Shown here: positions 5,411-41,181 of the stretch, one piece after another
Layout of the letters: each line of letters opens with the position of its first letter
How positions within the stretch are numbered: position 1 is the first letter of the stretch
Assembly: GCA_009103225.1 (NCBI GenBank)
Contig: RHPI01002949.1
Coordinates: 1 to 41,936 of the forward strand
Length of the DNA: 41,936 nt
Reading direction: 5' to 3'
DNA from: Chlorokybus atmophyticus
Taxonomy: Eukaryota; Plantae; Mesostigma and Chlorokybus algae
The notes under the pieces: generated by a model
What the model was told of the DNA's origin: nothing
The model's database searches: none
Seen by the model: the letters and a program-made list of their open reading frames with translations, nothing else
Translations under genes and position numbers: made by a program

Positions 5411-5451
5411 TTGACAAGTGTGTGTTGTGTGTTGTGCATTTGACCTTTCAG

Positions 5452-6637
5452 GTGATTGTTGCCTGTGATGAGCATTACGAACGGTTTTCACTGAAAGTAC
5501 CAACCGAGGATGACAAGATGGGAGCGGGAACGCACGACGAGTACACCAACATAGCGAACAAGGTTTACGAGGAGCAGAATCGCTCCGGCTGGTTGGTTCC
5601 GGTCATCTTCAAACCGCCCGGAGTGAGAAAGCATTTACCCGACGGGATTAGGAAGTTCAGCTACTTCACCCTTGGCGATCAGCAGGCAAGTTCACAAAAG
5701 AGTGGGTGTAGCATTTGCTCCAAGCTGTACACTTCTGTTTGGGAGACATGCGCTTGCAACATGCGCACAGTCACCTTGCATTGCTTGACAACTGCGCATC
5801 AGCAATCAGAGTGGTTTATTGTTTCCATCTTCGTGCACCAGGAACCCTGGGTTGGATATGACACCCTCGTGAATCACTTGGGCACTCTCCAAGCCTTCGT
5901 GCAGCCCATGCCATCACAACATAGGTTCGCATTGCGGCCTGGTTTGCATGTGTTGGCTTACCACATAACGCACGTAGTCTGAGTTCACTTGACTTTGCAG
6001 CGCTTCCGAGTCACCGCGAGTGGGCGTGCTTAGTGTTCCCGAGCTGCGGAAAAATGAGACAGAGCTTACTGACAAGTGGCGCAATGAGGTGCAAGACGCC
6101 ATGGACACAATACAAGCCTTCATGCAGACCTCGCCAGACTACTACGCCGACTTCAGAGCATATCGCGCTAGCGATGATAGCCAGCAAGAAGGGCCCTTGA
6201 AAAGAGTGGAGCAAGCACGCAGGTCAGACAACCTATGATGCATTGCAATATGAAGCCTTCACCTGATGGCCAAGTACTGATATGACCTCCGCACCAACAC
6301 GACATGACATGACAGGGTTCTGCGGGACTTCTGGCGTTCAGCATACAAATGGTACATGGATGGCATGTTGCCTCCTGACTTTTTCAGCAAGTCCAATGTC
6401 TGGTGTGCAAGAGGCAACACTTTCCGGCTGATGGTTGAGCCGATTGACATTGCCAACTACTATCGGCTCGAGCTGTGGAAGCAGTGGCCTGTTGGCAATC
6501 GACATTACCTTGAGGCAGACAGTCGGCCAGAGTACTACACGTTCTTGGAGCTGCAGTACGAGAAATATAACAAGACTGCTCCGCCGTCGTCAACACAGCG
6601 CGCATTGGACGAAATGGATGCCATCGAAGCAAAGTGA
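5452..6637 (+). CDS. SEFIR (TIR-fold) domain fused to an EDS1-type EP domain; 5'-partial. Exons 5452-5685, 5842-5924, 6001-6222, 6316-6637 (286 aa + stop)
   Basis: The SEFIR C-terminal half reads VIVACDEHYERF...GAGTHDEYTNIANKVY...LVPVIF...HLPDGIR..YFTL...GYDTLVNHL. The EP domain reads DYYADF...RRVLRDFW...MLPPDFF...W...GNTFRLMVEPIDIANYYR...HYLEADSRPEYY, matching the EDS1/PAD4 pattern GYYDSF..FWD..LP.DF..W..Y..LVEPLDIANY.R..Y...RP.RY. Intron phases 0, 2, 2 all match and the exon sum of 861 is divisible by 3. The upstream exon(s) were not identified. Confidence 0.85.
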
Positions 6638-13572: not shown

Positions 13573-14880
13573 CTAAAATACTAAGTAACAGTGCGCGCAT
13601 GTTGGCATGTCACAGAAGAAATGTTGCACATTACAACTGAGCACAAGCTCCAGAGCACAAGCTCCTTCAAGTGGCACCTGTGGATTCGAGCTCACTCTTA
13701 AACTCTTCCAACTTAGCAGTACAGTTTTCCAAGTTAAAATTTGGCTCTCAGAGGTTATGCTCTTCATCATAACCCAGCCACTTTACAAGGTACTCTGTTT
13801 GGAAGCCCTTGATAAATCTCCCGAACCGCTTGCCAACAATGGCTTCCGATCTCATACTCAAGGTCGCCCTCCACCTCAACAGGAGGTGGAGGTGGCTGCA
13901 TTCTACCATTACTCTTGTATGGTTTGAGCAGCGCCTCATGAAACACATTGTGGACACGCATGCTCTTTGGCAATTCAAGCCTAAAGGCTCGTGTTCCCAC
14001 AGCTGCAGAGACAGTGAACGGCCCAAGCCACCTGGGCAGGAGCTTACGTACACCACTAGTTTTGAGCCCAATGTTTCTGGTGCTGAACAAGACCTTGTCC
14101 CCAACCTTCAAACCCTCTCCAGGGCTGCGCTGCCGATCAGCATACATCTTATGCCGATCTTGAGCTGCTCTCAGGCAGACTTTGGCACTAGCCAATGCAC
14201 CGTGTATCTGCTCTGTCAAGTCTCTAGCTGTAGGCACTTTGCAAAACGGCTGAACTTGCAGAGACATAGGCGTCACATGATGCCTAACATAGTTCAAACA
14301 GAACGGAGTGCTATGCAGTGATCCTTGCCATGCATTGTTCACCGCAAACCAAGCTAATGCCAGGTGCAAATGCCTGTCATTAAACCTGGGTGAAGTGTAG
14401 TGTCGCAACACGTCTTCCAACACCTGGTTTGCACTGTCGTGCCTTCCCTCATCATGGCATGAACTCGTCGTAAACCACCTACAAGTTGTCATGCATGTCC
14501 GCATGCTATTGTACACCATGAGACCATGTCATGCTGTCTCACGCACTATCTCTCGACATATGGTAGACACACATATGAAAGATGCGTGTCACCACCCCCT
14601 GCAGCTGAGCGCCAACGCCCTCGTGCGCCTGCAGCTGACTCACACGCTCATCGCGTAGTCCTCGTACACGCCGGACAGTACCATGCTCCATCAGGGATCT
14701 CCTCAAGTGGTGGACGAAGGCACTCCATGTGCTAACCGGCAACACACCTGTCGCATAGTAGCATGGTGTCCCAACCCTCTGAAAGAAGCGTGTCCCCTTG
14801 CAAAAGGTAGGCAAGACGATCACAACTTGACTTGCAATCAACTGTTCACTCGTGTAGAGCAGTCCAAACTCAATCCTCAC
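13573..14880 (-). mobile_element. Decayed Ty3/Gypsy chromovirus: integrase C-terminus and chromodomain, with frameshifts
   Basis: KLLPRWLGPF...AFRLELPKSMRVHNVFHEALLKPY (GPF motif) is followed in another frame by EAIVGKR...TEYLVKWLGYDEEHN (chromodomain). Confidence 0.85.
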
Positions 14881-21280: not shown

Positions 21281-24099
21281 AGCTACATGCCTCACACGCT
21301 GGTTTATGCGTGATGAGGCAGATGCGAGTGGGCGTGCGGGTGGGCGTCGGACGGGGTCGTGGCAGCCCAGGTATATGGTGGCGCAATGTTGGTGACAAGA
21401 GTGATGAGGTGGGTTGACGGCTAGCGGAATGCGTGATTCTGTCATTGTCGTTGTCGCTGTGCTGTTACGTACATTGAGACTCTACTTCAGCCAGCGCTGC
21501 ATTGTGACATGTACTAGACGTTGTTGTTGTTGGTGGTGTTTATAGCAGGTTTACAGCCTGTGGATTTGCATAAGCTTCACATGTGGACAATACTTGTCTC
21601 AATGGTCTCAATTCGCACCCACCAACAGTTGACTCGCAGGTAATTGTTCTGATACATACGTGGACATATGACTAATGTGTGCAATTGCACTTGGAGTGGC
21701 TGTTAGTGGAGTATTTGAATGTTTCACAAGTGTAGCAACCATCGCATCATCCTCAATTACTAGCTCAGATTGCCACGCTTTCAATAACTTACTCAATAAA
21801 TTACTGACTATTACAGGTGGTGAGTTGTAGAGTTGACTGATGGTTTCTGGATGTGTTCATGGGACGCTCACCCAAATGTCTGTTTTAACCACCCAACAAT
21901 GACAACGTGCATGCTTGATAATGACCCACTTTGTTGGAATGCAGAGTTGGAAAACGTCACTGCACTCTGATCCAACAACTTGTATTTGTCCAGGATTGAT
22001 ATAACTGGTACGAGTGCTACTAATCTGCTGATCTGTTACATTCATAACTAACATCAAGCCAACGGTACATGTACTTGGTCACACAATTGCTACAACAAAT
22101 GTTGATGCAATGGTGGAAGGCGACCTGCAGTGTCGGCTGCTGTTGTTGTTGTTGTCGTTGTGTAGTCCACGTGCATGTACATTGACACGCTCATGCGCAC
22201 ACGCGCACACACATTATGAGAAATCAACTCACATTTCAAGGCGTTTTATATCACCATTTTGTGACCATTTCCAAGCTGCTTACAACTGAACTTTCAACAT
22301 CTAAATCCAGCCTCATACCTGTGGCAAAAGCTTTTGCACGAAAACTATAAACCATAGATGTTGAGCAAGTAGTGACAGACGCAAGGCAGTTGCCAGCCAG
22401 CACCTACCAGTCACCTGCAATAGGACATGTTGTAGATGCCCGTACGCAGCATAACATGCACGCGAAAGTGTATGGTGGCCGCGGAACGCAGGGTTGCCAT
22501 AATTGTATTAGAGACATCATCATTGGTGATGGAGAATACGACAGCAACGAGGTGGCTGCTGTCATGCTGTCAGCAGCATGTCTGCAAGCAGTGATGTGAC
22601 AGCTTTCATGCAGAACTCAAATCACGAGGACCAATCACTACTTGGTGCGTCAATGCCTACTTCTATCTACTGCTATCTTCAATTGTCAAGCCACTCGTAC
22701 CTGCAGACACCTCGCAGCGTCACAAGGATTGATGACTTTGACAACCTTGTCTGCAGGAGCATGGCTCAGTGACACTTATGTCAGCAAACACGCGCAGCCC
22801 AATCCAAACAGCAGAAGGTATAGCGCACCGTGTTTGCAGCCAACGCTAGCTTTTGCGCTGCGCAGCCGGCTGGCGGGGCGGAGGGCGTAGCTGCTCCAAC
22901 AGTTAGCGGCTTGCACCACTCATCTCCAGCAACAGACAGCTCCAGCTGCATGACGGCTCAGCTCCGCCCCACTCACTCCGCCGCCAATCTCTAGCACACA
23001 GTGTACGGGCATTCAGGGCTCCTCTGTCGCATAGCGTCTTAACGGCTCGCTTATTCAAACCCAAACACCAGAGCCCATACTGCAAGTTGTAACAAAGACT
23101 TTGTCAGAAGACGACACTATTCTGTAACCTACCGGTATCTCGTTCTTTTGGACCCGGAGACATGTTTCAAGTCGCATGCAGCCGATGAGACGAAGTCAAA
23201 TGCTTGCCGCAAGACTTTCTCCTACCTCTCATAAACGGAATGCTCGCGTTAAGGTGAGCCAGCTTGTTGACGCTGTGGGCGGGAGGGAGGAGGGGGCGGG
23301 CGGCGACGCTGCCGTTCCGCTGAAGGGGTAAGGGTATGGGCAACTTGCGCCTGTAGGAAGGGGCGCTGCGGTAGGTTGACGAGGTTGCTGGCTGGCTGGG
23401 TCAGCAAGGAGGCGCTGTCATTGCTCCGGAGTTGGTGTCTGTCTCAAGCTATAGAGCTTGTTGCTGGAGCAGGGAAGCCTGAAGCCTAAGCCTGGTAAGA
23501 GGTTGTTGTGACCTGCTAGCCAGAAGGTGCAAGACGCCATCAGTGCTGCCTGTTTATGAACAGGCAGCACTGATACATAATTATGTACCGACCAGTGCAA
23601 CAGCTTGCTCAAGCTGGCTTACATGCATGCACATATACCGGCGTAGCACTGTACTGCTTGGGTTTCTTGCTCCACCCTGGCCGCTGCAGCAAGTAGTTAG
23701 CTTTTAAAATTTGTAATGTTGTTGCTGTTGCTTAATGTGAGCGCTCACGTTTAGCCATGCTGTAAACATGTCCGTAAGCAGTCGCTGCCATCATGCTCGC
23801 CAGCTGAACTGACTCGTGCCAGTCCGAGTCACCACAGCTTGGCTGGGCTGGTGCTTGGTTTGGGGCAGCTTAGCTAACACACATTGAGTAAGTCTGCATT
23901 CAATTTTAGTTGCAGGAGCGTTTGCACTGCTGCGGGGTGTTGCAACATATCCGCTCTAAGCAATGGGGATCAATTGAACAGTGAACTGAACATCAATGCT
24001 AATACCCTCTGGCATGCGCAGTGCCCAAGTCCGCTGTACAAAGGGGAAGGAGCAAGAGCAAGAGCGCATGCATGCGTGGGGCTTATTACAACCAAACAG

Positions 24100-24815
24100 A
24101 TGGCTGAACCAGTGCCTCCCTGGCCCAGCATCCTCGCCTATCTGGTCGGCTTGCTCGGGTTCTTGTTTGGACTGTATGCTTCTGTGCGCAACAGGGAAGA
24201 TGCTCGAAACAGGCAGGCAGCAGAGCTGTCTATGAAGTACAATGGTCTTGATGACGCGATGGATGTTAGCAAGCAGTACCAGGACGAACAGGACTACTAT
24301 GTTGGCTTAAAAAGAACCGGCCACCACAGATTGAGAGAGCTCGGGGTAAAGTGAAAAACTTTTGGGATCGGGTTACAACGCAGTACGAGCGCGGTTCCAG
24401 CCCAGAGGACATTCTTTCTTCAACAAGCGACTGGCTCGCAAGAGGCAACAACTATCGGTTGCTGGTGGAGCTCATCGACATTGCCAGCTGGTATTCTCCA
24501 AAGGGTGCAAATTTTTATGCCTCCACCGGCAAGCATTACCTTCGTCTCTCGGTTGCTGAGGCTGTTGTGCGGCCGCGGCGTTATTACCTGCTGGAGCAGG
24601 CATACCGCAATGCGTACCCTGAGAACACTAAGAGCTCAGTCGACTACGCACTGAAGGAGCTCGTCATTGCTGGGGTGAGAGGGGCCCGGAAACCTGATGA
24701 TGACCTCAGGCAGGAGGCTCATCGGCTCTCCGATGAGAAAGCGGGAACATCAACGTCACTTTGCAAGCTGTCAAGGAGGATGAGGCTCATTTGGGTAGTA
24801 ATCCTATCTCTCTGA
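24100..24815 (+). CDS. Intronless single-transmembrane + EP-domain gene with one frameshift at ~24345-24354 (pseudogene or assembly error)
   Basis: The N-terminus has a hydrophobic helix (PSILAYLVGLLGFLFGLYASV), then DDAMD...QDYY. After the shift it reads VKNFWDRV...SPEDIL...DWLARGNNYRLLVELIDIASWY...KHYL...RPRRYYLLEQAY, colinear with the EP domain at 6001-6637. CAG|ATG at 24100 could also be a splice acceptor. Confidence 0.75.
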
Positions 24816-26929
24816 CTGTTGAATCCACCTCGCACTTGCCAATCTGCGAGGCAGTGAGGACACATAGTAGCCTTTGTGCGAACAGTTTCAACACGTAGAT
24901 ACTTATATGAGATGCACATCGACTGCTCGTGTGCATGCATATAATGCAACCCAATATGCGTGTACAGCATGATGGTCATTGGCATCCAAATAACATGCCA
25001 TTTAACGGTGTATGGATAAGGGTGGGGCAAACGTCAGAGCTGAGGTAGTTAATAGATTGGTGTGAAATGTGTTCCAGCTTAGTGATTGCGACAATGATAG
25101 CTGAAGATGATCTGCCATGTCATGCCTTGGCAACAAGTATATGCAAAGCATATTGCAGCAAGCAGTCATTTGGTGAGCAGGTGCACAGCAGGTGCACCTG
25201 CTGACCAAGTGCTGCCCGTTGTTTTGCACATAAGTCCAAGGATGCCTGACAAAACTTTCTCGTACTTAATGCACCACGTGTTGGTAGTGAGCGTGTCCGT
25301 GACCATGTGGGTGTAAGAGTGCGTGTCCTAGAGTCTTGTGCTGATGGCTGTGCGTGTGCTTGCTGTGCTGGTGTGATGTTGCTTTGCTTGCAAAAACCAC
25401 TGGAAAGCCTATAGTTGAGCATGACGCGCTACACAACCGGTGTACATATGTCTAGAGTGGTAGGCAAGTCTGCACGTGTAGAAGCATTTGTTTACAAAAC
25501 ATGACAACTAGAACCAACTACCTCAACTTCTCATAAACCATGTTAAGTACGTTGTGTAGTCGTGCGTCCCCGCCCCCAGTGCATCAGCTGCGGTCGGCTC
25601 CTGAATGAAAATCGCTCATAATGCTCATCACACAACCACGATCACCTAAACCATAATGAGAACAGCTGCGATTTGCAAATCACAGCATGCATTGCTATCA
25701 TGCAGACGTGCCTGCTTACTACATAAAATGCCAGAAGTTGGGGTTTGTTGATGACAGCGACTATGCGCAAGGTGTTCACCACCAGTAATAATGTGACAAG
25801 TGCTACCTTTGTGCCGGCAGCATTCAGCATTTGTAATGAAAGCCGGCCATGACTTGTACTGGTTCTTGAAGTCCACAATGACGTCTATGTTGTCTTGTTG
25901 CAGTTGCTCGGCAAGTCCCCGCGCTCTTTGTGTTGGTTGTCGAACTGGCAGCAGCTGATGATTGCTGTCAATGTTGCCGCTGGCGTCGCGGACAGTGCCC
26001 TTGTTGCCTCTCGTCCCTGCCCGCTACTTGCCACAGCACATGCGAAATGTAACAAGCATGGAACAGCGTTTGTTGCAACAGGAATGCTCTGCAAGCTTTA
26101 CAAGAAAATCGTAGTCGTAGTTGAACTTACACAGAAGCAGCATTGTAGGAGCGGCCAGTTGAAATATGTGTGGTTCCAGTAGCCGGCGCCAGTGACAATG
26201 GATGCTGCCGCAATTAGCACTGCAGGCAGCCTTTGAAATACTTGTCTACGCATCTCAAGCAAGCGCTTCTGCTTCTGCTGCTAAGCCAAGCGCGGTGCAG
26301 GCCAGCCTTACAATGGGTGCAATGCGCCCAACTCTTGTCAAGGTTTCAGTTCAGCGATAGCCATGTCAGCACCAACCGAGTGTATAGCTGCGGAATAACA
26401 CAGCACACTGTCGACTGGTGGTAAGACGCTGTGTACCATGACAACTGACATGGCAAGCTTCCAAAGTAGTACTAGTAGTTATAGCATGTCAAGTTGTAAA
26501 CTTCTACTCTCAAAAGTGCACATAAGCTCGCAGAACTGAGCAGTGCATGTGCATTTGTGGCGGCAGCGGTCAAGTTCATGTCCATGTCGTCGTCATTGTC
26601 GTCATTGTCGTACTGCTAGTGACGGAGTTAACACGACGGCGGCACTGCAGGTACTGCGTCACATTAGCGTCAGCGTCAACCTGCGTGTGCTGCTGTGTCG
26701 TCAGTCGGTCAACGCCTCTGCCGCCGCTGCTTGCGCCTAGCTTGCATTAGGCCCCTACCTGATTAGCCCTCTTGCGTACATAGGTTGATAATGATGTTTC
26801 TTTGCTGGCTTGGCTGGAGTGTTTGCATCCGCATGTTGCGCATGCGTGGCACAGCCTATTGATGCTCCGCATTGGAAGCAAAGGAAGGAATATTGCTGCA
26901 CAAGAAGTTACCTTTGCTATTGGGTCCTG

Positions 26930-27031: not shown

Positions 27032-27230
27032 ATGTCAACATAGCGTAAGGATTACACAAGTGGTTCGCCATGCAGCGTGGTGATGGCGATTGCATTGGCA
27101 CACACCGCGCAGAACGTCTGAACCACTTTTGCACTTTTTGGTTGTTGTTGTTGTTGCTGTTGTGTCGGTGCTGTTGTCGCTGTCGCTGTCGCTGTCGTTG
27201 TCGTTGTCGTTGTCGTTTGTTGTTGCTGTT

Positions 27231-27842
27231 TGTTACGACAAGGGTCCGGCCATCTTAGCCATAAAAGACCATGGTGGGAATTATGGCTATATCAATTCTT
27301 ATGTATTACGCCCTAGCCCTCTGGCTACCGTAACACACCTCCCCATTAGAACCTTAGCACGCCCTCGTGCTAATTCTTATAGGGTTCTCACAGCCCTCTG
27401 CCCGACGGGGACCGAGCTGTTACGACCAACGCTTCTCTGGCCGGCGCCTTGCGCGCCGCAACGCGACTTGCCCAGCCCGCGTTGTCGTGCTTCGTTCGCA
27501 ATCCAGCAAACGTTCTTCGTGCGCAATCCAGCGAACGTTCTTGCGACCGGCGCACCGCGTCGCATTTCTCACCGTCCCCCCGTGTTCCTTCCAACCGCGA
27601 CTTTCCCAAGGTCGCGGGTCCAACCGCGGCTTGCCAGGCCGCGGGTCCCAGAATCTTTGCCAACCGAAAAAGTCACAGCTCTATCCCCCTTGGGAGTCGA
27701 GCCTGCGACCTTTAGGTTGTCAGCTCACGATACCAATTGTTACGACAAGGGTCCGGCCATCTTAGCCATAAAAGACCATGGTGGGAATTATGGCTATATC
27801 AATTCTTATGTATTACGCCCTAGCCCTCTGGCTACCGTAACA
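27231..27842 (-). mobile_element. Complete TRIM (non-autonomous miniature LTR retrotransposon), 612 bp
   Basis: Two 105-bp LTRs (27231-27335 and 27738-27842) appear identical by eye, with termini TGTTACG...CGTAACA. The 5-bp TSD is CTGTT on both sides. The minus-strand PBS TGGTATCGTGAGC is iMet-like and the PPT is GGGGAGGTG. There is no internal coding capacity. It is inserted in a GTT/GTC microsatellite. Confidence 0.93.
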
Positions 27843-28489
27843 CTGTTGTTGTCAGTGCTGTTGTTGTCAATTGTAGTGATTGACGCACACTGCCACGCAC
27901 GCAAGCAGAAAAGTGTCCACCGCATGTCCATTGGAAAGGTTACAACCGTTTTTACTATCTGAAGCAACAACCGAGTGTTTCATAGAAGCTTGCTTGTGCC
28001 TCACAATCTTCATCGTGTAGATTGCAGCAGTGATTCGACATGCATTGCAACTGAATATTTCGTCTATGGAAGCGGGTCTTGAAAGTGATCATGTATAGCA
28101 AACATTGCGCGTCGCACTCTCCATCCCCAATACCAGTTCTACACGCCATCAAACCACCTCTCAAGACATCATCCCACTCAATAGGGAAGATGCTAACAAC
28201 TAAATTACCTGAACTGGATATAACGCACTTCCGTTGTCATCAATCTACTTCATAGCGAAACACTTGTAGCGAAACACAGGGGCAAAACCCCAACTGTGCA
28301 TACAAACAAGTCAAACCTCCACAACCATCTCACCCACCCCCACAACAATGTGGGTGTGCGCTTTACACTAAGGCTACATACAGATGCACTCTCTGCATCA
28401 TACCAAAATGTGGTAAATTGAAGCTAAATGCCCACCTGAACGAGTGCATCACACACTCGTGACTGTGCGTGTGTAAGTGTGTGTCGTGC

Positions 28490-29516: not shown

Positions 29517-32010
29517 GCACGTGTGGGTGGGTGCATGCATGCGCGTGCGCCACAATCAGGGCAAGAGCTCGCAGACAAAACAGTTGCCCAAACATGAGAC
29601 GGGAGTGGTAAGTTTGTGTATAGATGTTTTGGATGAAACATAGAGAACCTGGTCAGCAAGGAGAGTGTAATCACATACTGCGTCAACTCTGCTGAGCACT
29701 GTTCCTGTTATTGCTGTTGAACTCTACTGTGCAAGATCGTCGTCACATGCAGGGGGGCTGTGTCGTATGCATAACCTGACTACAGCTGATATCCCCCCCC
29801 TCCGGGGAGGGGGGGGNTAAGGTTGAGTTTATTACAACAGAAGCGGACTGTACATGACTATTAAGTTCATCAGTTACAACTTGCGCGACAGTTTTTGCAC
29901 TGCAACTGCACCAATGTTGAAGTAACCACTACTGTTTCTGCCCGCTGTAACAATATTGACGTTGACAGCAGAAAAATTGCACATGCTCAGATACCATAGC
30001 AGGCTTGCCGTAAGTCGCTGCTGCACGCAACGAGCTGAAGTACTGACTGGCTGCAAGCAGCACGCATGTCAAAGAGTTGTATGTGAAGATGTGTTTGTAT
30101 GTATGTGTACACGCGCGTGCACATGTGTGTGTGCATGCATGCGTCTGTGCACGTAGACGCATGCATGCACGAACACGCACGGGCGCTTATCAGCCTGTGT
30201 GCGGTACAAATGCTGATTTACGAGCTGTGAAGTTGGTTCAGCTAGACAAGCTTTGTGGAGCAGGCAGCAATGGCGAGGCATTGCAGAGCACCTGCAGAAG
30301 GCCGAAGCTGTGCTTGCAGCTGTAGCCATCTGCGTCAGAAGGTCGACGTTATTCCTCCAGCTGGCAAGTGCAAACCAGCGCCGCCCAGCAGTGCTGAGCG
30401 GCGCTGTCCGCTGTCAGCGCCATGACGAAGCTGGCGCCTGCTGCGCTGCGCTTCACACCACCCGCCCGGACACCCCTTCCAACCCGGCGGCGGACAAACA
30501 CTGCAGCCCGCCCGCCACCGCCTCACCGCACCGCTCCGTGCCGTGCCGCCGGCAAATCAAGCAAACAAGCTGCTTGTTACAAGCATGAGCATGTGAATTG
30601 ACAAGATGTGCGCCAGAATCCTCCGGCCCAGGGTGGAGCCCGGGGCTGGCGCAGTAGGCGTGAGCTTGCTTGATGCATGTGCAGGCATGACGTAACTTGA
30701 AACCACATCATGCACATGACACTAATCCGGGAATTGATACCGGTATTATGGTAGGCCTTAAAGGGTTCGGGAGACCTACCATACTACATGACCAGCTATA
30801 CGACGCGGTTTTCATGACAACTTTGTATAAGCCTACCGGTAGCACTGTTACCGATCAGGGTGGGTAGGCTGTATTTGGCGCCTGATTCATGGATGATGTC
30901 ATGACATTGTTGATGCGTGACAGGTTCGACTCCGTTCGTCTTGTTCACTGATCTGGATTTGCACGCTGCGGCACTTTGTCACGGTACCTGGCTCCGCGAG
31001 GCCTCAGCGGGCGGCATGGACACGACCAGAGCAAGCGCTGAGCAGCGGCGGAAGGCGCGAGGGGCGACGACGACGCCCGACACAAGCTGGAGGCGGACAA
31101 GCACGTTGGAAGGAAGGAAGCAAAGCGCAGCTGAAGCCTGACTTGGACCGCACGGGGCGAAGGTGCGTTGCCGTTTCTGGTCGTTTGCTCGCCGCTGGCT
31201 GTGGCAAGCAAACATGCCAGAACAGCATGAATGCCAGCTAGCTAGCCACATGCAGGTAAGCGATGCAATGCTTGACAGACATGCATGTCACGGTTGTGCA
31301 AGCTAGCGGTGCTGGCGCTGGACGGCAGCGCCATGGCAGGAAATAAACTTGGTTACATATTGTCGAAGCGCATGCGCAAGCGAGAGCACTATACTGATAT
31401 GAGTCTGTCATCGCGCTCGGCCGCAGCCTCATTACAAATACCCGTTTGAGGCGTTGCGTGGAGAGAGTCAAACTCACGTGCAGCCGTGTTTGGTTGTTAG
31501 TGCACTTACTTTTGTGCTTGCTTGGTGCATTGTCAAGACTTGAGTATGGAGCATTTGCGGCTAGCGACTTACGCTTCACCAACACACGCATCATAGCTTT
31601 CTATCACAAGTCTGCAATTAGTGCATTGCTATTCCGCTGGCAAGCCGCACCGCGCAGTTGTGCTAACTCAGCAGCAGCATATACATGTGCGTGTCTGGTG
31701 CGCACAGGCGTTACAAGCTCGTGACAATTCTTGTCTCACTGCAGGCTAGCGAGGGGGAGCCGGCTTTAAGGTGGTAATGGCCGCAGTCGCCGTTGAAGAG
31801 CTCAAAGGTAAGCTGGCGAACAACACATGCAGTGCTTCTCAAGATGTGCTTGACATGCAATTGTGGGTCGCCAGTAGTGGTCAGTGCCAATGCTGCACCA
31901 CTTGTACCGTGTACAAGCCAGCCAAAAAGGTTGTATACTCTGAATGTCATGTATTCCATGAGTCGCACTCACCTCGAACCTGCTTAAATATGCGCATGTT
32001 GCACAGTGTA

Positions 32011-32553
32011 GATGAGTCAATGACGTCAAACACCTTGCTTTGCCCTGGCTGTGACAATTTGCTGAGCCATAGAGGGGACGTTGAGAAGAGCTTCGTTTAT
32101 TATCTGAATGACTTACTCAACCGAGCAGAATTGACCTGCTTCGTGGATGAGCTCAACTTGCAGCCCGGGGAAGAAGGCTGGTTTGTGATTACCGCCAATG
32201 TACGGTCCGCTCGCATCAAAATGCCTGTTTTGTCGCGTGGCTACGGGGACTCCTAGTACTGCCTGGAAGAGCTGCGCATCATGATGGAGAATTCAACAAA
32301 CATCGTCATGCCTATCTTCTTTGACAACAAATTTAACAAGCTGAAGGCCACAATTTAGAAAAGTATTAGCAGGTGAGTAGATTCTCCCTGGACCGTCATT
32401 TATCTTCCAAGTAGCCATGTTCCTGGTTACAAACATGTTTTGTGTCTTTAGGGCATGCCTGAGTGGTAAGCAGGAATATGTTGAAAAGGAATCTGCATAC
32501 CGTGGTGCGCTTGATAAAGCATTTAAAAACACAAGCCTGAAGCTCGAGAATAA
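32011..32553 (+). pseudogene. Plant-type TIR domain gene with two in-frame TAG stops (exons ~32011-32372 and 32452-32553)
   Basis: It reads LLSHRGDVEKSFVYYL...CFVDELNLQPGE...VLSRGYGDS*YCLEELRIM...VMPIFFD...TI*KSISR|ACL...SAYRGALDKA. The stops are at 32254 and 32356. There is a phase-2 intron GTGAGT(32373)...TTTAG(32451) and a further donor GTAAGT at 32554. The 5' boundary is approximate. Confidence 0.8.
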
Positions 32554-33600: not shown

Positions 33601-35314
33601 GCTGTCGCGTCGAGGGGAGTCGAGGGTCACGCTGTCTCGGACAGCTGCATGGACAGCCATGCTGTGCTGGACATGCTGCTGCGCCACCTGTGTAACGCGC
33701 AGCAAGAACAGAAAGTTGACCCCAACCCTCATGGTGACAAGTGCTTCGTGCCGCTGGTGTGCTGCTGCTGGGTAGTACGGGCAGGTGGAGTCGGTGTTCT
33801 CCCTAGTGTACATGCTGTGCTGTAGCACACAAGTTAACAAGCCACCCCCCCTGAGCTCTGGGGGAGGTTCCAGCTCCAGAGCTCAGCTGCGAGCGCAAGT
33901 GAGGAGGGCCGTTGGTACGGCAATTGTCGCACCAATAATCCTCCATAGGTATCGTGTCCAAAGGTGGCTCCAGGCAGTAGCAATGCAGGCCCTTATTGCA
34001 GCCATCGCAGAGCATCATGAGTGCGTCGTCGCTGGCGCTGCCGCAGCGTTCACAGCGTGTGCTGCGCGCGGGACGAGGGTGTTGGATACGCCCGAAGCCG
34101 GCTACGTAAGGAAGGTGACATGGCGCACAGTTCACCATGTTGTCCTTCAACCTCTCTCCGTTTTGACCAAGGAGGTCCAGCACCCCTGTGGGGTACACTC
34201 TGAGTACCTTGTAGACGATGCGGCCTACGGAGGTGTCAAGCGTATCTTTGGTGGCTGCCATGCGATAGGCAAAGTCCCCCGCTTGGAACCGCCGTTGGCG
34301 CTCCTTGTAGAAGCCGCTGCGTACGCGCTCGTAGCGCAGCGTGTCGCGATGCGCAGGTTGTTGAAGGCCATGGGGACGGAGCGCTCGAAAAGCGCGGCGC
34401 GCGTGGTGATGTCGTGGTGCATCCAGTCAGGGTCGTCGAGGTTGTTCACGACGCGATCCACCTCCTGCTGCGCACGGAAGGGGAGCAATGATGGTCGCCC
34501 GAACAGCAGGTAGTATGGGCTGTACTCCCGCAGAGCCGCCTGCTTTGACAATCGATATCCAAGGGCCACCCACGGGAGGTGGTCATCCCAAGTGTTCTTC
34601 TCGTACTCCAGCACGTATTTGCGGAGTGCCTTCATGATGGTCTGTACTGTACGCTCGGCGAGGCCGTCGGCTTGAGGGTGATCACGCGAGGTACGGCGGT
34701 GGTCGATGTAACATTTGTCCAAGAGGGTGTCGAATTCCCCGCTGAACTCAGTACCTTGGTCAGTGATGACCTCGGCGCAGCTGCCAAATCGGTTGAGAAA
34801 GTGACAGAGGAAGGCTTGAGACACCCCCCTACTGCTCTTGTCGGGTAATGGTACCAGCTCCACCCATTTGGAGAAGTGCTCGATTATGACCAGGATGTAA
34901 CGGTTGCCACGCGCTGAGGGTGCCAAGTCCCCCAAGATGTCGAGTCCCCATCGGTAAAAGAGACCGGAGATGGGGAGTGGGTGCAAGGTGGCGCTACGCG
35001 TGTTGAGGCTGGCGCGCACCATGTCACACTGCTGGCAGTGGCTAACGAACCCCTGCACCTGTTTTGTTAACCCATACCACCAATATTGTGCCCGCACTAG
35101 GCTGACTGTACGCTTGACACCAAAGTATCCAAGCTCAGTGTGGAGGGAAGTGATGATGCCCTCGCGCGTGATCGGTGTCGACACTTCCTGGTCTTCGTCG
35201 TGGAAGCGGCGATACAGCTTGTCACATGCCATCGATAGTGACGGGTGCGGTGGGTGACTCGGTCCTTCTCTCGGGCGCTCATGCCGGTGGGAAGCTGGCC
35301 ACTTTGAAGAAAGG
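33601..35314 (-). mobile_element. Ty3/Gypsy remnant: integrase (HHCC + DDE) plus C-terminal PHD finger, PPT and start of the 3' LTR; 5'-truncated and frameshifted
   Basis: The integrase reads HTELGYFG...CQQC, WGLDILG, VITDQGTEF, HPQADGLAERTVQT, SPYYLLFGR. The PHD reads CERC...MMLCDGCNKGLHCYCLEPPL...YWCDNC. The minus-strand PPT GGGGGGG is followed by TGTTAAC starting at 33839. Confidence 0.9.
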
Positions 35315-35875: not shown

Positions 35876-37348
35876 ATGAGCAGGCCCACCCCTTTCTCGC
35901 CAATAGAAGAAGGGGACCTCAACAGCTGGAGCCCAACCTCCAACCTTACCTACGAGCGCGCAAGTGAAGGGAGCGATTACCGTAGCAGCAGAGGCTCACG
36001 CCCCATCTCCGGCTTCACCTCCTCTCACTCCACTCCTCGACAACGAGCATCTCCACCACCGTCGGACGGTGACGACGAAGAGATGGAGCCCTCCAGCTCA
36101 ACCAACTCCCTAAGCTTCTCCGGACGCCCTGGCACCACCTCACTTGACGAGTTCATTATCATGTTCCACTCCAAGATGCGGCAGCAAGCCCTCAAGAGCA
36201 AGGACTGGACAGATGAGGTATCGTTTCATGTGTCCGCTCAATACCTTGATCACGAAGCACATGATGTGTGGAAGTCCGTCGCTGAGTTGCACAAGATTGA
36301 TGGCTATGGCGAGTTGGCCAGCACAATAGCCGCCACGTCACTGCATAGCCCATCGGTTACTATCCCTGTAGCAGCGGCCCCGCCCGCCTCAGTCACGGGT
36401 CTCACTCTAGCTGCAGCCATGGAGAAGGCAGAGAATGAAGAAGTTGAGGTGGTAGTGGCCTCATTGACTCCTGCAGAGATCGAAAGCAAGAAGGCCGAGC
36501 GCCGCATCAGGATACTCAACCGCACCGCTGCCATCATCAGGGAGCAACAAGAGGAGCAGCAAGCTGCAGCGTTGGAGATGGGTACGCCCCTGCTACCAAC
36601 ACCGAACTCGCGTGCTCCAGCGGGAGGCAGTGTTTTCACCCTCGGTTCAGTGGCATTGCGTGCACCCGCGCTTACGGTGGGCGCGGCCATGTCGGACTCC
36701 CCGTTGAAGGACCTCTACGCCGCACTCCGGAGCACCTTCCCACCGCAAACCAACAGCAAGGTGGAGGAGTTGAGGCGTTTTCGACGGAAGCCCCACGAGG
36801 ACCCTGTCCGACTGTATTCACGGTTGGAAGGGTTGCCAAAAGACACTGACTACAAGATCGTCAGTGAGGAGGCGGCAGCAGTGGTGTATGTGGCCGAGTT
36901 GGATCCCACCCTGAGTGAGTCAACGCGCCTGACGCTGAACTACAGCAGGCCCCTCGGCTACACCCTCAAGGAAGCTTTCGAGACTGCACAAGCCATCCAT
37001 AAGCGTGCAGTGTATGAGAAAGCGGTGCTGGACACCAACCGCAGTGCCTCACGGCCTATGGCAGGCACAAGTGCAGAGCCTCTTCGGCGGGACCGCAGCC
37101 GAGAGCCGCAAGGCATCCACAACAAGGATAAACGGTCAGCTAACGCTGCCCTTGTGTCTCCAGTGCTGTGCCACCGGTGCGGTCGACATGGCCACTACCA
37201 AAAGGAGTGCACCGAAGATTACGGCAACCTTGTGTGCGATTACTGCCACAAGACGGGACACTTGAAGACAGCATGCTGGCTCAAGTTCCCTGAGCTGCGG
37301 CCCTCTATCGGCTACAACAACGGCAACAACGCTGTTGGCTACCGCGGC

Positions 37349-37380
<32 letters not shown>

Positions 37381-38522
37381 CGGGGGCTACAACAACAGCA
37401 ACCACGCTGGCGGCTACAACAACAGCAACAACGCTGGTGGTCGCAACAACGGCAACAAAGCTGGTGGCCACAACCCCAACAACAACAGCAACGCTGAGGC
37501 CCGCAAGGAAGAAGCTGGCTACAGAGGGAAAAACCGCCCTCCACAGCACAAAGGATCTGAGGGACGTCCTCGTGCTGGAGCTGCTGTTGTAAAGGCACCA
37601 ACCAATCCACCGGCTATTGACCAAGTGGCAGCCGTGATGGCGCGCGTGGCACAGCTGGAGGAGAACGAGGAGCAGGACTATCAAGCCTGCTATGCTGCTA
37701 GGTGGGCACTGATGGCACCAAAACGGGATAGGGACTCTCCCACGCCGTCACGCGTACAACCATCAAGACGTGCGCGCAGGGAAGCTGGCGCATCGTCAAC
37801 AGCGGCATCGTCGGACGCCACAAGTGGTGCTGCCTCGGCAGCCACAACCACCGCTGGGACGACGCCGTCGACGACACCGTCGGCGTCCACACCGTCCACG
37901 ACAGCAGGTGTCAGCACTCTTGGCACCACGCTGTCCCCGGTGATGGAGAGCACCCACGCCGCAACAACCATGGTCGTTGGGTTCGTAAGTGGTGAATCCA
38001 TCACTCCTGCCTCCATTGAAGCGACCACATCGGCCGCAACTGCTGCCACCCTCACGGCCGCCACCTCAGTGACGACGACTGCTGCAGGTGCCACCACCAT
38101 CGCCTCCAGTAGTGCTGCCGCACCCACTGCACCACTTCCTGAGTTTTGAGCGGCACCGCCACCAGAGTTGGACGTCACACAGCAAGTGCCACGCGGGCCA
38201 CAAGCAGAACGCGCCTGGGCGTCGGTCCTACGCAACGTAGAGCCCACCACCATTGCGTACGGACCAGGGGGGCAACGCACCACGCGCGTGGCACGCGATG
38301 ATCGCATCTTGCCCCTACCACCTCCAGAGTACCACACGCTGCCGGAACCCACACAACAGCAGCTAGAGGATAAAATTCTCGCCAGCACTGCACCAGAGAT
38401 GAGGGATCGTCTCTTCGGGGTCACCTATCGGCGACCTGCAGTATTGGAGCTGGCCATCCAGTTGTTCCTGGCATTACACGCACGATTGCAGGGCGCACCC
38501 AGTCAAACGCAACAACCCATGC
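35876..38522 (+). mobile_element. Retrotransposon gag-like ORF (757 aa) with two CCHC knuckles; the frame continues past a TGA until cut by an LTR insertion
   Basis: The knuckles are CHRCGRHGHYQKEC and CDYCHKTGHLKTAC. There is a gag-like LRRFRRKPHEDP segment and an (AAC)n Asn tract. ORF 38168-38527 is in the same frame as 35876-38149. Confidence 0.75.
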
Positions 38523-39164
38523 TGTAACGATGCTCGTGCTCACATACACAGCACACAAGTTATACAACACATGTGTGCAGCTGAGCACAATCTTCACACC
38601 GGAACCTTGCTTTCACTCGCGCACGCACGCACGCGTCGAGCGCGGCCACGCACACGAACACTACTACTTCTCACGCCAAGCAAGAACGCAGCAGTGTGCC
38701 TTGGACCACAACTCCCTCAAGCATGCACCAGCATACTCACAGCAGAGAGCAGAAAACAAAGTTGGTTGCATTACACAGGGTTTTTCTATTTATACAAGCA
38801 CTAGGAAGAAATAGCCTAATTAACAGGCATTTCATTATTCACTACCAAATCTAAAGGCAGGTCCAAGTGCAGGCTCCCCGCCACGCGCGTTGGGCCTTTG
38901 GCGGCTGTGTGACTGTGCAGTCCGCGTCACCTGGCACTGCACAGCGCGTGTCCAGTCAGCGGCTGTGTCACAACCGCGTGGCAGGTGGGTCACGTCGCCG
39001 AATTAACTGCTGTCGAGCAGGTCGCAGGCGAGTCGCGCGCGGCAGCAGGGGCAGGCGCCACATGGGCTTAATAAAGCTCATAAAAGCCCTCATCAAGCCA
39101 GCAAAAAAGGCAAAATAAGTACTTTATGTACAATAAAATACAAAGAATGCCCCAGGCTGTTACA
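38523..39164 (-). mobile_element. 3' LTR (642 bp) of the downstream chromovirus
   Basis: The termini are TGTAAC...GTTACA. The minus-strand PPT GGGGGGGAAGGGG directly precedes TGTAACA at 39164. Confidence 0.8.
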
Positions 39165-41181
39165 CCCCTTCCCCCCCGGGGGAGCTTCGTCCTTGAAGCT
39201 GACGACTGCCTCCTCTGGCCTTGTGGTCTTGCAAGACCTGTTTGGCATTGGTAAAGCTCTCCTCGGGCTCGTATGTCGCCTCGTGCATTGGATAGCCACG
39301 CCACTTCACCAAATACTTGCGCACGCCTCGGATCAGCTTGTCCGGGACAACTACTTCCACTTCCCACTCAGCTTCACCTTCACGAACCACATCTGGAGGC
39401 GGACGAGCTGGTGGCTCCCCTCGATAACCTCTAAGAAGCGAGACATGAAAAACAGGGTGCACATGCATGGTATTGGGCAGCTCCAGCTTGTAGGCCACCT
39501 TCGAGATGACCTTGATCACTTTAAAGGGCCCAAACCATCGCTCACTCAGCTTGCGCACCCCCTTGACCAGCTGCACATGCTTGGTTGAAAGCATTACAAG
39601 GTCACCCTCCTCGAACACAACATCCTTGCGACGCGCATCTGCGTATTGCTTTTGCCGGTTTTGCGCCACAAGCAGAGCCTCTCGAGCTGCCTTGGTAATG
39701 TCGGCACACCTTTCAAGAAAGCCGTCCACGGCCTCCACATCTGAACTTTGCATGCTAGGCACCCACGCCGTCAATGGCGTCAATGGATGTTGCCCATAGT
39801 TCATAAGGAAAGGTGTCACGCCCGTGCTTGCACTCTTGTGGTTGTTAATGGTGAACTCAATCAGCTCCAGCATGTCTCCCCAATTGTCTTGGCGGCTGTT
39901 CACATAGCACCGTAGCATGTCTTCGATGACGCGGTTGGCGCGCTCCGTTTGGCCGTCCGTTTCAGGGTGGTACGCGGTGCTGAACTTCAAGCTTGTGCCT
40001 AGAGTTGCGTGGAGAGCTCTCCAAAAGTTGCCAGTAAACCGTGGGTCTTTATCACTGATAATGCTTCTTGGAAGGCCATGAGAGCGCACCACATGCTTGA
40101 TGAACAACTTGGCAGCCTCGGGAGCTGTGCAAGTCGCCGTACATGGCGCCAATCGCACCATTTTGCTAGTCTTGTCCACAAACACCAAGATAGCATCATG
40201 CCCTTTACGTGTCCGTGGCAGCCCCGTGATGAAGTCAAGAGTAACTTGCTCCCACCTCGTCAAAGGTATCGGCAATGGTTGGAGCAGCCCACTGGCGCGT
40301 TGATTGCTCGCCTTCACCCTTTGACAAGTGTCGTACAATGCCACATAGTCCTTAACGTCACGATGCATCTCCGACCAGAAAAATTTCTGTTTCAACAAGG
40401 CTAGTGTCCGTTCCAGCCCTTGATGACCAGCCATTGGCACATCATGCGCTTCCTTCATCAATGCCACGCGCATGTGCGCAATGTTGGGTATGTACATGCG
40501 ATCGCCATGCCATAGCAGCCCGTCCTTCAATGCCCAAAGGCCGCTATGTTCAGTCCCATTCTCCAACGCCTCAATGGTCTTCTCCCCCACCGCGTCCTCA
40601 TGCAATAAGGCACGGATCTGGTCAAGCCACTTGGGCTGCACTTGCACCACCGTTTCAAGCGCGTTGAGTTGACGGCTTAATGCGTCCGCAACCTTATTTG
40701 AAGAGCCCGGCTTGTACTTCACTTCAAAGTCGAAGAGTTGGAAGAACTCGAGCCAACGAGCTTGCCGCCGTGAGAGGTGAGGCTGCGTTTGAAGGTACCT
40801 TAATGGCGAGTGGTCCGTCTCAAGTGTGAACCGCTTGCCTTCAAGGAAACAACGCCATTGCCGTAGCGCTAGCACCTGCGCCAGCAATTCCTTCTCATGA
40901 ACGGGGTAGTTGAGCTCAGCCCCGCTCATTTTCTTGCTGAAATAGGCCACCGGTTGCAAGCCGTTGCCGTGATCCTGCTGCAAAACAGCCCCAATAGCCT
41001 TGTCGGACGCATCACACGCCACCACAAAGGGCAATTGCATGTTGGGATGCAGCAGCACGGGAGCCGATGTCAGGGCCTCTTTCAAGTCGGAAAATGCCTT
41101 TGTTGCAGCCTCCGACCAGCTCCAAGCCACCCCCTTCCTCAACAATATTGTTGAGGACACCGGTAATTCTGGACCCCCCAA
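39160..41181 (-). mobile_element. Chromovirus pol remnant: RNase H, integrase and chromodomain in one open frame; RT and gag missing
   Basis: Motifs: CDASDKAIGAVL, NYPVHEKELLA, HDVPMAGH, LDFITGLP, SDKDPRF, QTERANR, GPFKV, YLVKWRGY...TYEPE. The first Cys of HHCC appears replaced (ALYDTC). Confidence 0.95.

Follow-up and report, generated by a model that had tools for sequence, protein, structure and literature searches.

The locus at 24100-24815 carries, on the forward strand of the window (the whole stretch of 41,936 nucleotides of Chlorokybus atmophyticus DNA analysed here), a single transmembrane (TM) helix followed by the core of an EP domain, and the two are read in different frames (Table 1). 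The window is eukaryotic; long ORFs are scarce in it, and it contains microsatellites, N gaps and retroelement-like ORFs. The frame-1 ORF opened by ATG 24100 reads MAEPVPPWP, PSILAYLVGLLGFLFGLYASV, RNREDARNR...DAMD...DYYVGLK and ends at a stop codon at 24352-24354. Its helix, residues 9-29, holds a GxxxG motif (GFLFG), and the 19-residue Kyte-Doolittle maximum of 2.12 (residues 11-29) lies above the usual threshold of 1.6. There is no K or R ahead of the helix and there are four R within the 10 residues past it, a charge pattern that predicts an N-out, C-in membrane anchor.

The EP core lies in the frame-0 ORF 24351-24815, which holds FW..W.ARGN.YRLLVELIDIASWY..HYL..RPRRY. This ORF matches the EP exon of a paralogous gene near the start of the window (6320-6616; tblastn E 9e-14), the Pfam family EDS1_EP (PF18117; E 4.6e-9, 36.7 bits, curated cut-off 23.1) and, among solved structures, EDS1, SAG101 and PAD4 (E 2e-4 to 6e-4). 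The region upstream of the EP core contributes a TM helix only. The earlier note had described a hydrophobic helix of about 21 residues, followed by sequence colinear with the EP domain of the first EP gene, and this description is borne out: the helix counts 21 residues, belongs to the ORF opened by ATG 24100 and agrees with both the hydropathy and the charge distribution, and the EDS1_EP score is far above chance. The change of motif that the note had pointed to is likewise present, with ELIDIASWY at this locus against EPIDIANYY in the first gene.

Table 1. Features of the locus, its neighbours in the window and related loci on metagenome contigs.
Feature	Position	Strand	Remarks
Probable non-coding 5' exon	23280-23494	+	donor CTG/GTAAGA at 23494/23495; start undefined
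Inferred 5' leader intron	23495-24021	+	acceptor gcgcag/TGCCC; by homology, from contigs of relatives
Coding part 1	24100-24308	+	frame 1; start codon, TM helix 24124-24186, first EP helices (DAMD..DYY)
Frame break	24309-24313	+	A5 run; window one base fewer than all contigs of relatives
Coding part 2	24312-24779	+	frame 0; EP-domain core, motif ELIDIASWY 24468-24494, RPRRY
C-terminal extension	24780-24815	+	11 residues (MRLIWVVILSL) and stop; window two bases shorter past 24778
Convergent SEFIR-EP front half	25541-26232	-	tblastn with P0008 residues 8-158; frame changes near 25920 and 25600
Paralogous SEFIR (back half)-EP gene	5449-6634	+	EP exons 5993-6223 and 6317-6634; motif EPIDIANYY
Head-to-head TM-EP/TIR locus, L001	4862-6690		TM-EP gene intronless
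Head-to-head TM-EP/TIR locus, L002	4440-6225		TM-EP gene intronless
Head-to-head TM-EP/TIR locus, L003	2-1787		TM-EP gene intronless
Head-to-head TM-EP/TIR locus, L006	1378-3917		TM-EP gene intronless

Gene structure and genomic surroundings

To place the locus within a transcript, Logan contigs of four public runs (X1-X4) were compared over 23000-26000. X1 is the only DNA run; X2-X4 are presumed to be RNA, which is the guess of the tool and is supported by spliced joints, and their contigs are 3-10% diverged from the window. Contigs of the relatives join 23426, 23494 or 23558 to 24019-24031, which gives the leader exon and intron listed in Table 1. We considered a coding upstream exon and rejected it. 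An in-frame stop codon is found four codons ahead of the donor at 23494 and no ATG comes after it, which makes ATG 24100 the likely start codon. Two further ATGs, at 24068 and 24072, lie out of frame between the acceptor at 24022 and ATG 24100, and the one at 24068 is also found in a contig of one relative.

Two pieces of SEFIR-EP genes accompany the TM-EP copy. The first gene has a 93-base intron between VEQARR and VLRDFW (donor CAG/GTCAGA, acceptor ACAG/G) and corresponds to residues 122-412 of the SEFIR-EP relative P0008, and the convergent piece downstream of the TM-EP copy corresponds to residues 8-158. The two are roughly complementary halves, 20 kb apart and on opposite strands, and their separation may reflect a rearrangement. 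In the convergent piece, contigs of the relatives have an additional CGCA behind 25919 and an additional G or T at 25599 or 25603.

Several other features were observed in the window. A perfect direct repeat of 107 bases (27230-27336 and 27737-27843, spacing 507 bases) lies inside an ORF with the repeating peptide CYDKGPAILAIKDHGGNYGYINSYVLRPSPLATVT; a small mobile element or a duplication introduced in assembly could explain it. Four long ORFs, at 13767-14519 (-), 34225-35232 (-), 35876-38149 (+) and 39160-41181 (-), are retrotransposon-like and, judged by their translations only, read as integrase, reverse transcriptase/RNase H and gag (with a CCHC zinc knuckle and a chromodomain-like tail). 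A TIR-like ORF at 31771-32325 (+) scores 22.8 bits against TIR_2, below the Pfam cut-off of 28, with a weak zf-4CXXC_R1 match ahead of it; it also matches the TIR exon of the TNL gene on the metagenome contig L001 (E 7e-5).

An intact relative and the EP fold

A word-based protein search gave one match, P0001, and returned no gene model for the window copy. P0001 is JGI Chlat1 1191 (Chrsp114S01653), a protein of 258 residues from Chlorokybus atmophyticus that is already present in the public gene set with PF18117 precomputed. With 89% identity to the window copy, it shares the arrangement of leader, TM helix and EP core but is unbroken, which makes it the intact TM-EP homolog that the earlier note had proposed to look for. 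In frame 1 of the window, 86 of the first 98 aligned residues equal residues 2-99 of P0001, with frame 1 unmatched beyond this point; coding part 2 takes over with 89% identity to P0001 residues 100-257. The EP motif is VEPIDIANWYS in P0001 and VELIDIASWYS in the window. The annotated start of P0001 lies 30 residues further out (MYRQ...), at a position that reads TGG in the window, and these extra N-terminal residues are disordered in the structural model. No Pfam match to Lipase_3 or to any other hydrolase was found in the window pieces or in P0001.

P0001 matches EDS1_EP with E 7e-15 (55.6 bits), and in a phmmer search against the sequences of solved structures its best 13 matches are all PAD4, EDS1 or SAG101. 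A HMMER search of 1.84 billion representatives recovered 107 relatives at E ≤1e-3. The AlphaFold2 model of P0001, computed from an alignment of 55 relatives (A1), reached a pLDDT of 82.9 and a pTM of 0.72. When compared with the PDB by Foldseek, the best 24 matches of the model are all EDS1-family chains (E down to 2e-5). In VIA-align, Z was 13.5-16.3 against the EP domains of EDS1 and PAD4 (156-174 aligned residues), with other folds at 6.0 or below; model residues 59-242 align to AtEDS1 361-580 or AtPAD4 291-497. The post-break piece of the window, modelled alone, gave a pLDDT of 87, and its best four solved-structure matches are EDS1 or PAD4 (Z 7.2-8.2; next 4.7). The models thus support an EP fold for most of the domain, and not merely for a short motif, in line with the EP domain named in the earlier note.

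We have also considered that the EP likeness could be due to chance or to the composition of a helical protein, in a family unrelated to EDS1. The Pfam alignment spans only positions ~10-120 of the 211-position model, and helical bundles often score middling structural Z values, both of which speak for such a match. However, three independent tests agree, namely Pfam, phmmer against solved structures, and the structural comparison, with its fall in Z from EDS1/PAD4 to the next unrelated fold. The signature residues (FW, W, EPxDIAxxY, Y and RP) are moreover near-invariant across algal and seed-plant sequences, and we therefore regard a chance match as extremely improbable. EDS1_EP scores above its curated cut-off were obtained for the window piece and for 20 scanned relatives.

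Frame break, lost stop codon and paralogy

The helix and the EP core do not form one ORF. From about 24312 the colinear reading is in frame 0, with KNRPPQIERARGKVKNFW aligning to VEQARRVLRDFW of the first gene. The switch out of frame 1 falls between DYYVG and IERAR, and we therefore place the break at the run of five A residues. Translation of the sequence as assembled, starting from ATG 24100, gives 84 residues comprising the TM helix, the first EP helices and an out-of-frame tail, without the EP core. Rescue of the frame by splicing was examined and rejected: the intron of the first gene sits at the homologous RR/V position, but in the window copy the frame-0 reading (IERARGKVKNFW) is colinear without an intron even ahead of the donor-like site GGTAAAG, and a frame-restoring intron would remove the near-invariant FW.

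All contigs of X2, X3 and X4 that cover 24308 carry an extra A or C, which restores an intact frame; the coverage of the DNA run X1 excludes 24111-24413. A second difference lies at the other end of the gene, where contigs of X2 and X4 have GA behind 24778. These two bases create a stop codon (..LLRRR*) that is absent from the window, where the reading continues for 11 residues past the stop of the relatives, to a stop codon at 24813-24815. Two residues of the EP motif have also changed. A Pro is replaced by Leu at 24471-24473, in a column that is Pro in 54 of the 56 family members, and an Asn is replaced by Ser at 24486-24488, the equivalent of EDS1 N472. Relative to P0001, one base is missing from the window copy at 24309 and two past 24778, its motif shows EL where P0001 has EP and S where P0001 has N, and it reads TGG for the upstream in-frame ATG, with a layout that is otherwise common to both and to the sister proteins P0002-P0004 and P0007. 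Among the best-supported of the listed differences, which come from a mix of relatives, 17 are nonsynonymous and 6 synonymous, a ratio close to the ~3:1 expected without constraint. The substitutions fall across both halves of the copy. Apart from these changes neither half contains a stop codon, and any decay must therefore be recent.

The contigs also bear on the number of loci. Those of X2-X4 over the coding region carry the extra base of the relatives and the letters of the relatives at nearly every listed site. Their substitutions match residues of P0001 (V5A, Y14C, S59N and others), which assigns the expressed contigs to the P0001 type. The window-type form, without the extra base, was not found among the contigs of the three probable RNA runs, an absence that weighs lightly given that Logan contigs lose rare variants. 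In X1, a P0001-type contig covers 24510-24703 with 11 differences from the window, and window-type contigs, for example over 24811-24981, show no differences from the window where P0001-type contigs differ. The presence of both types in one DNA run suggests two paralogous loci in a single genome.

We consider it likely that 24100-24815 is a decayed paralog from a genuine TM-EP family of Chlorokybus, already a pseudogene or about to become one. This reading is based on the frame break, the lost stop, the lost motif residues, the near-neutral ratio, the missing window-type RNA contig, the evidence for two loci and the broken SEFIR-EP neighbour. The second EP architecture described in the earlier note is not a working one in this copy, beside the SEFIR-EP gene, given that the copy is out of frame, lacks the stop of its relatives, has lost two conserved motif residues and is unseen in RNA contigs.

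An intact and functional gene would be the main alternative to decay. The frame break could be an assembly error in the A run, and the locus would then encode a TM-EP protein of ~240 residues with the motif ELIDIASWY. A homopolymer is a classic site of assembly errors, both frame halves are open without internal stops, the DNA contigs of X1 leave the critical stretch uncovered, and the metagenomic relative P0063 also has EL in place of EP. However, the second indel, of two bases, is not in a homopolymer and takes away the stop of the relatives, and the SEFIR-EP neighbour has a 4-base and a 1-base frame break within the same 2.3 kb. Other long ORFs of the window, of 555, 673 and 757 residues, are intact, which makes a general problem of indel errors in the assembly unlikely. 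Together with the lost motif residues, the near-neutral substitutions, the lack of window-type contigs in the probable RNA runs and the lack of a gene model in the protein search, these observations lead us to regard an intact gene as unlikely, albeit worth keeping in mind.

It is also conceivable that the truncated product of 84 residues is produced and serves as a small decoy at the membrane or as a dominant-negative partner of an intact TM-EP protein. Immune gene clusters often retain truncated paralogs, and the start codon, the TM helix and the splice donor and acceptor are all kept in the window copy. In contrast, no such transcript is found among the contigs, and with near-neutral substitutions over both halves there is no sign of selection on the short product. 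We judge a decoy or dominant-negative role to be very improbable.

TM-EP proteins and TIR-type enzymes

At the level of the family, the view of EP as a portable module, which the earlier note had put forward, is upheld by Pfam and by fold comparison. In at least 18 representatives a TM segment stands at the N-terminus, ahead of the EP domain, among them P0001-P0005 and P0007 of Chlorokybus and the metagenomic proteins P0016, P0027, P0063, P0085, P0097 and P0106. Nearly all of these representatives are richer in K and R past the helix than ahead of it, and all except P0011 contain small-xxx-small motifs. EP follows a TM helix in P0001-P0004 and P0007, SEFIR in P0008 and LRR-SEFIR in P0009. The Chlorokybus protein P0005 (640 residues) has two EP domains, the first after a TM helix and the second after a TIR domain and a SEFIR-like stretch.

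The EP domains of this family are linked to TIR-type enzymes. In addition to the fusions, TM-EP genes are paired head-to-head with TIR-NB-ARC(-LRR) or TIR genes at three loci, on L001, L002/L003 and L006, which are eukaryotic, intron-containing metagenome contigs. The G+C content of the head-to-head contigs is 52-57%. No such TIR or NLR partner was found in L004 or L005, and no TIR or NB-ARC match was found upstream of 24100 in the window, where the nearest NLR lies at 36-2477 and the nearest TIR candidate is the TIR-like ORF described above. In another relative, P0022 (307 residues), a weak MLKL_N match (E 8e-4) and a CotH match precede the EP motif EPVDIANWY, and an executioner-type N-terminus could be fused to EP in this protein.

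TM-EP proteins share with EDS1, PAD4 and SAG101 a homologous EP domain (FW..W..G..YR.LVEPxDIANYY..HYL..RPxRY). They differ in lacking the lipase-like domain, and hence the LLIF dimer interface, and in having an N-terminal TM helix instead; they are also shorter (~190-350 residues, compared to 540-620 for the EDS1 family) and come from a streptophyte alga rather than from seed plants. In EDS1, residues D469, N472 and Y473 recognise the phosphoribosyl moiety of pRib-ADP (bioRxiv 10.1101/2022.04.01.486681). The equivalents of the EDS1 ligand contacts D469, Y473 and R493 are mostly kept in the TM-EP family: D in 45 of 56 members, an aromatic residue at the Y position in 52 of 56 and R in 40 of 56, with N at the remaining EDS1-side contact in 35 of 56. 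In the window copy D and R are kept, N is changed to S, and Y to W. The equivalents of the PAD4-side contacts K380, Y383 and F387 are not conserved in the family. From this partial conservation of the EDS1 side, we infer that the TM-EP family may sense TIR products.

How such proteins would work can be outlined from their sequences. Intact members would be small single-pass membrane proteins with a short N-terminus, one Gly-rich TM helix and an EP domain without a lipase-like domain, and their charge distribution would place the EP domain on the cytosolic side. TM helices with small-xxx-small or GxxxG motifs could stand in for the lipase-like domain as a dimerisation device, and a dimerised pair of EP domains could form a ligand pocket for the products of neighbouring TIR or SEFIR enzymes. 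Both this TM-driven dimerisation and a role as membrane effector are hypotheses. Taken together, we tentatively propose that intact TM-EP proteins are receivers, and perhaps executors, of nucleotide signals made by TIR or SEFIR enzymes in algae, that lipase-less EP domains paired via GxxxG would form an EDS1-like pocket at the membrane without RPW8-type helper NLRs, and that the window copy would have belonged to this system until its recent inactivation. As a whole, this scheme is speculative, and we would sooner expect it to be revised than to hold in full.

Bacterial nucleotide sensors, such as SAVED and STING, are fused to TIR or transmembrane effectors in systems of the CBASS/Thoeris type. 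TM-EP proteins would be analogous in design, given that a putative nucleotide sensor is tethered to the membrane beside TIR-type enzymes; however, they have no sequence or fold relationship to SAVED-TM or STING-TM proteins (no PADLOC match; Atlas fold TM ≤0.37). We also examined and rejected a bacterial origin via DUF4760/Abi-like proteins, for which E values were 0.04-0.09, at 13-14 bits against a Pfam cut-off of 25. Atlas feature matches to DUF4760/Abi-like proteins had a score of 0.92 with fewer than 170 shared features, and the link was confirmed neither by the same fold search nor by PADLOC.

Full-text searches of the literature gave no description of the TM-EP architecture. In the papers examined, EP proteins are placed only in seed plants (PMC10834447; PMC9806590; bioRxiv 10.1101/572826), with one remark about short EP-like sequences in green algae (bioRxiv 10.64898/2026.05.20.726525). 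The locus at 24100-24815 itself adds little to this, namely an instance of birth-and-death turnover of the family inside an NLR/EP cluster, and Chlat1 1191 is a better example of a working TM-EP gene than the window copy. A distribution of EP proteins in seed plants alone, as given in those papers, offers no account of how algae, mosses and ferns read TIR signals. The putatively membrane-anchored, lipase-less EP family of Chlorokybus makes this question testable, given that its members sit among and beside TIR, SEFIR and NLR genes.
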